A stretch of 64,000 nt of DNA from Guillardia theta CCMP2712 (Eukaryota > Protista > Cryptophyta): NCBI RefSeq assembly GCF_000315625.1, contig NW_005434595.1, positions 173,826-237,825 of the forward strand, read 5' to 3'. Numbering within the stretch: position 1 is the first letter of the stretch; the number at the start of each line of letters is the position of its first letter. The position numbers and the translations under genes were made by a program. Below the pieces are notes generated by a model, which was given only the letters and a program-made list of their open reading frames with translations, was not told where the DNA came from and searched no databases. Positions 9,960-10,870 of the stretch are shown here, one piece after another.

Positions 9960-10870
9960 CTGCCATTAGCCATTAGGCCGAAGTACCCCCACCAGCCCCC
10001 ACCCCATCGTATCCTCCGTACCCGTACAGATTCAAACCTACCCACCAGGTCGTCGATGTGTACCCCTACCACAATAACTCCACCCCTTATTTCCATGACC
10101 CACCCCAGACAAATTCTTGTAATTCTTTTACCCTACCCTAACATTTACGCAAATAAATGAGGAAGAAATACCCGTACTTTCTGAATTCATACCCCACCCT
10201 ATCTCATTCTGTCTACAATGTCCCTACCCCCTATGTCCTCCTTGTCAAACACCCGATCTTCCTCATGACATTTTTATCACCCTTCCTACCCACCCAACTA
10301 GGATCCAGCACCCCTTACCATGATTACACCACCCGTACAAAAGTACCCTCCCTTATCCAATACCCCTCTTTCCAGCTGTCCGTCCCGACACCACCCTTCG
10401 GAACAGATGTCCTCTACCCCCATCGATCTTCCACCCACCCCAAATTCTTTCTACCCCTTTGTCAAGCGTACCCTCCATCGAAGTACCCCCATAAAAGGCT
10501 ACTTACCCGTACAGATTGACCACCTGAATTGCTTTCCTACCACCACTACCCCCCAATATACATTCGATAATTGAGCAGCTTACGTCTGGATGCTCCAACC
10601 CCAAAAGAGAACCACCCTACCCCACCCTCGCGACCAAAGACCCTCTTCCATCAGCCCACTCGGGAGGGCAGTACCCACCCATCCAATGTGCAGAGGAGGG
10701 GTGGTGACTCATTGGCTCAAAATTCAAAACGAGGAAAGTTGGGCGCTTGGGTTCCAACCAAAAGATTCCAACTTGAAATGCTCAAAGATAATTTTGAAGT
10801 TTCAGATAAATATTTAAATTCAAACATTTATTGGGGTTTCCTTGATTGCCATATAAAGTACCCTAGGCGG
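9960..10870. promoter_or_regulatory. TACCC-rich island in the divergent promoter between Tubby and the NF-YA-like gene
   Basis: 21 TACCC on the + strand and no GGGTA, counted by eye in ~900 bp; flanked by AT-rich blocks; no credible coding frame. Confidence 0.5.

Follow-up and report, generated by a model that had tools for sequence, protein, structure and literature searches.

TACCC-word arrays on the start side of genes in Guillardia theta are probable lineage-specific promoter elements

What is a dense run of the word TACCC, all on one strand, doing beside the 5' ends of genes in the cryptophyte Guillardia theta? The question arises from a 64-kb stretch of the genome (the window, meaning the whole of the DNA analysed), in which a first-pass annotation had counted 21 TACCC and no GGGTA on the + strand of 9960–10870, listed seven further clusters, and proposed a lineage-specific promoter or chromatin code. 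Our recount of the 9960–10870 stretch gave identical numbers. We show here that the islands are untranscribed, non-repeat, promoter-side arrays of one short word (TACCC, or GGGTA when it lies on the other strand), specific to the Guillardia lineage. From sequence and position they are probably a Guillardia-specific promoter element. The features of the window are listed in Table 1.

Table 1. Arrays, accompanying segments and RNA-defined genes in the window.
Feature	Position	Strand	Remarks
Putative tubby-like gene	7675–9973	−	Spliced contigs with CT..AC joints from runs X1, X2 and X5; 12 short introns
Main array	9984–10676	+	20 TACCC, all on the + strand
A+T-rich segment	10700–10860		Between the main array and the + strand NF-YA-like gene
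Single TACCC, then short GC word block	10859–10885		One further TACCC followed by GGCGGGCCCG
NF-YA-like gene	10924–11888	+	Contigs from X1, X2 and X5; two introns
Weak cluster	21671–21875		4 words, flanked by the Ank-C2 gene (− strand) and the AMP-binding gene (+ strand)
TACCC array	30167–30390	+	6 words; starts 13 bp beyond the ATG of a 404-aa − strand ORF (28940–30154)
A+T-rich core	30400–30830		Separates two arrays
Mixed-strand array	30847–31266		13 words (9 TACCC, 4 GGGTA)
TACCC array	34813–34906	+	4 words
Mixed array	41861–42002		8 words, immediately upstream of the − strand ABCG gene
A+T-rich segment	42010–42215		On the far side of array 41861–42002
GC-rich block	42218–42635		CCGGGCC/GGCCCGG-type words; beyond the A+T segment, further from the ABCG gene
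Weak cluster	49975–50045		3 words
Barely a cluster	53122–53159	+	2 words only, ~570 bp upstream of the + strand ABCG paralogue
Two arrays	63557–63994		3 and 7 words, at the window end and cut by its edge

The enrichment survives composition-matched backgrounds, both Markov models of order 0 to order 2 and dinucleotide shuffles. Models fitted to the stretch 9960–10700 itself predict 2.6 words at order 0, 4.7 at order 1 and 10.7 at order 2, whereas it contains 20 (P ≤ 0.0025); at order 3, a model fitted to the island matches the count, trivially. Across the window there are 118 words on both strands, compared with 47.5 ± 7.4 after dinucleotide shuffling, a total that none of 100 shuffles reached. 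Of the 118, 71 fall in the eight listed regions, which together span 5.2% of the window. Each of the seven clusters listed beside the main array exceeds the local background of 0.79 words/kb, unevenly so, from 19 words in 30100–31300 and 10 in 63450–64000 down to 2 in 53115–53165. The divergent gap at 14630–15270, which had been named as an exception, is a real one, having two words and a CT-rich tract in place of an array. Four words within 174 bp at 23016–23189, absent from the first-pass list, lie in the body of the AMP-binding gene and are probably a chance cluster in coding sequence.

Transcript ends were defined from RNA at the main locus. Contigs from three runs (X1, X2 and X5), which were classed as RNA by guess and whose contigs are spliced, with short introns removed, were mapped onto 7600–13500. 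The − strand gene is putatively tubby-like, by our reading of its C-terminal peptide. Its deepest contig ends at 9973, only 11 bp from the first array word, with other ends at 9934 and 9909. Its first exon (9205–9973, 769 nt) places a 5' UTR of ~730 nt ahead of the long ORF, and leaders of such length defeat the placement of promoters from coding sequence. The intron mapped at 8778–8838 of this − strand gene lacks GT-AG ends as mapped; shifted by one base, it is a GC-AG intron. On the other side of the array, the NF-YA-like transcript (its translation contains the motif QYHRIMRRR) starts at 10924–10928, ~250 bp past the last word of the array and 40–60 bp downstream of the element at 10859–10885. 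The A+T-rich segment that intervenes has an inverted CCAAT (ATTGG) at 10711, and there is an Inr/FPR-like string near 10710. No contig from the three runs covers 9974–10923, and no Rfam family matches the array stretch. Since the contigs halt at 9973 and resume at 10924–10928, the main array lies in an untranscribed gap flanked by two diverging genes, right beside the 5' end of a transcript. The contigs also place the 3' end of a third gene, on the − strand, at 12008. The resulting tail-to-tail gap (11889–12007), the one such gap delimited by RNA, contains no word, as had been claimed for gaps of this kind. The parallel claim that introns contain none was slightly overstated: the RNA-defined intron 8089–8142 has one isolated word.

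Beyond the main locus, word positions were compared with genes predicted and oriented by a splice-aware codon-model parser; the sample was 200 kb of randomly drawn genome pieces plus 22 loci at Ras-family genes. The parser overlooked short-exon genes and, depending on penalties, called 16–56% of a reversed control coding, so only genes scoring 12 or more were used (confident genes, false calls ~10–15%). The reversed control and the real sequence gave 8 and 59 calls at a threshold of 10, and 4 and 42 at a threshold of 15. Around the 52 confident genes, word density is 2.14/kb in the 1 kb upstream, 0.59/kb in the 1 kb downstream and 0.85/kb in gene bodies (upstream versus downstream in these ab initio genes, paired Wilcoxon P = 0.0003), with three or more words upstream of 12 genes and downstream of none. 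Excluding the window leaves these values almost as they were (2.12 and 0.65 words/kb, three or more words upstream in 9 of 41 genes and downstream in 0 of 41), a roughly threefold difference. The upstream flanks of 16 Ras-family genes oriented by Pfam total 73 words and the downstream flanks 24 (Wilcoxon P = 0.016). None of 27 islands lies inside a predicted gene, and wherever one comes within ~1 kb of the end of such a gene (11 islands), that end is the 5' one. The claim that clusters lie upstream of genes is thus borne out by RNA at the main locus and by these statistics, from 52 ab initio and 16 Pfam-oriented genes, elsewhere. An array lies right at a transcript or coding start or no more than a few hundred bp away; the candidate ATG of the − strand ABCG gene, for example, is at 41855–41857.

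Among all 5-mers, TACCC/GGGTA ranks first for upstream enrichment; CGGCC, GGCCC and CCGGC are also enriched, and CCCTA mildly. Gene bodies do not avoid the word (observed/expected = 1.16), and an array is present at only ~23–44% of the sampled genes. Genome-wide, same-strand TACCC triplets spaced by 8–30 bp number 4060, compared with 1339 for the backwards word. These pattern counts are slightly inflated by true tandem repeats of 24–28 bp units bearing TACCC (G000:C2:257497–258005, C52:127759–128003 and C1:1382436–1382548).

The word itself is more specific than five letters. Within islands its consensus is approximately M-S-TACCC-C, i.e. (A/C)(C/G)TACCC(C), with CACCC as a weaker variant. The base at −1 is C in 52% and G in 33% of island words (C or G in 60% of isolated words), the base before it is A or C, and TACCC is followed by C in 55%; isolated TACCC words lack these preferences. 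In 26 of 27 separate islands the frequency of C/G at −1 is above the isolated-word rate of 0.6. A genome-wide version of the flank test does not discriminate, since the backwards control shows a similar bias (1078 versus 145) to the word (C/G versus A/T flank, 2741 versus 260). Among XYCCC words only TACCC (3.2-fold), GGCCC (2.25-fold, as part of the GC blocks) and CACCC (1.84-fold) are enriched upstream, which indicates that the signal is the word and not C-richness.

An orthologous promoter allows the arrays to be compared across species. In Guillardia a divergent pair of light-harvesting genes (L005 2685–6351), ~63% identical to each other, has a TACCC array 60–230 bp upstream of each ATG, and no TATA-like word was found near these arrays or in the gene-proximal upstream DNA. 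Scanning metagenomes with one of the two proteins gave 33 loci encoding proteins 84–93% identical to it, and the head-to-head pair is kept in six distinct environmental cryptophyte loci (L046, L048, L049, L051, L053 and L058), all of them environmental contigs. The spacers of these six relatives measure 0.4–0.9 kb and contain 0–2 TACCC/GGGTA and 0–2 CACCC/GGGTG words, compared with 2.4 kb, 16 and 27 in Guillardia; four of the six have a TATAAA-type word. In ~92 kb from the relatives there are 3 same-strand word pairs, whereas a random 200-kb sample of Guillardia has 39. The word is therefore not retained in the orthologous promoters, the arrays are specific to the Guillardia lineage, as the first-pass annotation had supposed, and the light-harvesting promoter works elsewhere without them. 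The comparison shows a promoter remodelled in one lineage with gene order unchanged. The window contains a large inverted segmental duplication (38405–44899 versus 57149–48235, its further arms 82–90% identical) with two ABCG genes (40071–41313 and 55279–54043) that are 95% identical in DNA; the regions upstream of these paralogues do not align, so they offered no footprint. Of the contigs reached through the ABCG protein, one is transcript-like and the other comes from an organism of 60% GC.

We read each array, with as much doubt as confidence, as a lineage-specific, promoter-proximal cluster of putative binding sites, enlarged by local duplication. The sites would be repeated targets of one abundant sequence-specific DNA-binding protein, for which a C2H2 zinc finger or a Myb-type factor recognizing GGGGTA(G/C) is a candidate, and its binding would mark or open a promoter region often common to two diverging genes. 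New sites would come from local duplication or slippage; on this proposal neighbouring sites share a strand and the orientation of an array to its gene is free. The multivalent cis-element array suggested in the first-pass annotation thus stays the best reading, drawn as it is from association. A wider version appears rather doubtful: Guillardia, or its close kin, may have its own general promoter-marking system, in which (C/G)TACCC(C) arrays and a dedicated abundant factor serve a quarter to half of nuclear genes at open, often bidirectional promoters, added to or replacing compact TATA-like divergent ones of the kind that four of the six other cryptophyte loci have kept at the light-harvesting pair.

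The internal structure of the arrays is where the main rival to a cluster of binding sites has its strength. Adjacent island words share a strand in a ratio of 161:46, and the spacers between words stay G-poor once the words are masked. The main array, rich in C and poor in G on the + strand, has ~19 further CACCC/ACCC words, with gaps between neighbouring ACCC words mostly of 14–35 bp. It also contains dispersed short direct repeats of 13–31 nt; a segment of ~55 nt (9979–10032) recurs at 10479–10517, and exact repeats reach 14 nt (P = 0.03 in order-2 simulations). Strand sharing, G-poor spacers and internal duplicates are marks of arrays growing by local duplication, and neutral, cryptically simple DNA would show them just as well; in such DNA a slippage or local-duplication bias of the Guillardia lineage would have seeded and spread YACCC words, promoter function being incidental. 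Indeed, strand coherence, G depletion, short internal duplications and absence in relatives would all fit a pure mutational bias. We consider this neutral origin a serious possibility, though not the probable one. On such an account arrays persist only in promoter-side spacers because these are the only sizeable untranscribed and unconstrained DNA in a gene-dense genome, and the RNA-defined tail-to-tail gap, at ~120 bp, indeed has no room for an array. Perfect (TAGGG)n microsatellites at ~30 internal sites ((TAGGG)4 being rarer than its backwards control), the long Guillardia light-harvesting spacer beside its short, word-free counterparts, and the variation of arrays in size (2 to 21 words) and in orientation to the adjacent gene are further points in its favour. 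Neutral spreading does not, however, readily account for the recurrence of a single word, its flank preference unchanged, in 26 of 27 unlinked islands, or for arrays that hug transcript and coding starts and leave the spacer unevenly filled. Nor are other C-run words enriched upstream, or the commonest simple words of the genome (GGAGG/CTCCT types). Words of this CT-/GA-rich kind are the most clustered in 264 kb of genome. In the window they form long tracts (CTCCTCC/GGAGAGG types) at 14730–14920, 42830–43170 and 11889–11950, one of them next to an assembly gap and another within the tail-to-tail gap 11889–12007.

The same variability argues against a fixed code. Size ranges from 2 to 21 words, orientation varies, a quarter to under half of genes have an array, and the spacing autocorrelation proposed as a check revealed no period, at 10–11 bp or otherwise; the strongest, 12 bp (z = 2.9), is under the 95% null maximum of 3.8, and helical phasing was rejected. 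This bears also on a second alternative, that a strand-asymmetric, sequence-specific process acts here with no transcription factor bound, the arrays being DNA-modification targets, replication origins or nucleosome-excluding sequences, or scars of transcription-coupled mutation from unstable upstream transcripts. Such a process would suit the strong local excess of C over G in untranscribed DNA beside start sites, and the A+T-rich and GC-word blocks that often accompany arrays. We nevertheless think it improbable, given that the direction of the skew relative to the neighbouring gene is inconstant, that the 10–11 bp period is lacking and that only 33 of 202 island words fall in runs capable of forming G4 or i-motif structures (loops ≤ 12). 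The main array has no such structure with loops ≤ 7, and G4/i-motif formation was rejected as the basis of the signal, other C-run words not being enriched upstream. As to the blocks, many arrays have CCGGGCC/GGCCCGG-type sequence at their gene-distal side, also at L012 3720–3900, L016 and L020, and the block at 42218–42635 occurs once in the genome by BLAST. At three loci of the window an array is followed by an A+T segment and then a GC block, an order that is not general.

That the arrays are a decayed transposon, SINE or satellite family inserting near gene starts is very unlikely: they do occur at thousands of promoter-proximal sites, as some elements do, and a few 24–28 bp TACCC tandem repeats exist elsewhere in the genome, but mutual BLAST of 16 islands with their flanks (word 9, E ≤ 0.01) gave only CT-rich low-complexity matches, neither the main array nor the GC block has a second match in the 87.1-Mb assembly (669 contigs), TRF (minimum score 30) found no tandem unit in the main array apart from a 15-bp GCCATTA repeat at its edge, terminal inverted repeats there are short and imperfect (13–17 nt), and its 120-aa ORF has no Pfam match. 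The arrays are thus neither transposon copies nor tandem repeats; that the islands do not align with each other and are not tandem had been noted in the first-pass annotation. A telomeric source, with the word derived from telomere repeats or a telomere protein moonlighting at promoters, was likewise rejected: Guillardia contigs end in TTTAGGG, and TACCC lies within neither TTTAGGG nor (CCCTAAA)n. The window has an internal degenerate telomere-like tract at 52685–52750 (CTAAACCCTAAATCCT...).

We found no published account of how cryptophyte nuclear promoters are built or of their motifs; TACCC matches in Fanzor papers proved to be vector polylinker oligonucleotides. New here are the flank-extended word, the strand-coherent arrays of variable orientation to the gene and the light-harvesting comparison between species, together with RNA-defined transcript ends, genome-wide counts and the exclusion of telomeric origin, G4 structure and phasing. 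A scorable word that flags the start side of genes would aid transcript-start annotation in Guillardia and would point to native promoter fragments for expression constructs. The word, for example as (CCTACCCC)n, would be a concrete bait for the putative binding factor. Remodelling in one lineage with fixed gene order also makes the arrays a usable case for the origin of promoter sequence classes; if they are neutral, they record a strong lineage-specific mutational process acting only beside gene starts.

Several known systems resemble the arrays in part. CACCC/GT and GC boxes are bound by Sp/KLF zinc fingers, and GAGA-factor arrays occur in Drosophila promoters. Like the Guillardia arrays, these clusters place many copies of a short C- or G-rich word in untranscribed DNA beside start sites, in either orientation to the gene, and in Guillardia CACCC is co-enriched with TACCC. 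The Guillardia core differs in being a TACCC preceded by C/G, in arrays that reach ~700 bp and at least 20 copies with near-perfect strand purity, and in being missing from orthologous promoters of related cryptophytes; we know of no factor described as recognizing such a core. The general regulatory factors of yeast, Reb1 (TTACCCG), Rap1 (ACACCCRYACAY) and Tbf1 (TTAGGG), have been proposed to open promoters, and at many unrelated genes their sites too are ACCC-containing words placed promoter-side; ACCCGTAC, present four times in the main array, resembles the Rap1 core. The Reb1 consensus is not matched, as T at −1 and G after the word are each found in only 6% of island words, and the yeast sites are generally single or paired whereas Guillardia arrays contain 4–21. 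The plant telo-box (AAACCCTA) and interstitial telomere-like elements of promoters are likewise short and C-rich, and both lineages have TTTAGGG telomeres, but (CCCTAAA)n does not contain TACCC. Cryptically simple sequence, reportedly described by Tautz and co-workers as scrambled short-motif DNA produced by slippage, is similarly non-tandem, non-alignable and strand-coherent, with a few over-represented short words and internal duplicates. What sets Guillardia apart is that a single word, flanks included, turns up at thousands of unlinked sites, always on the start side of a gene.
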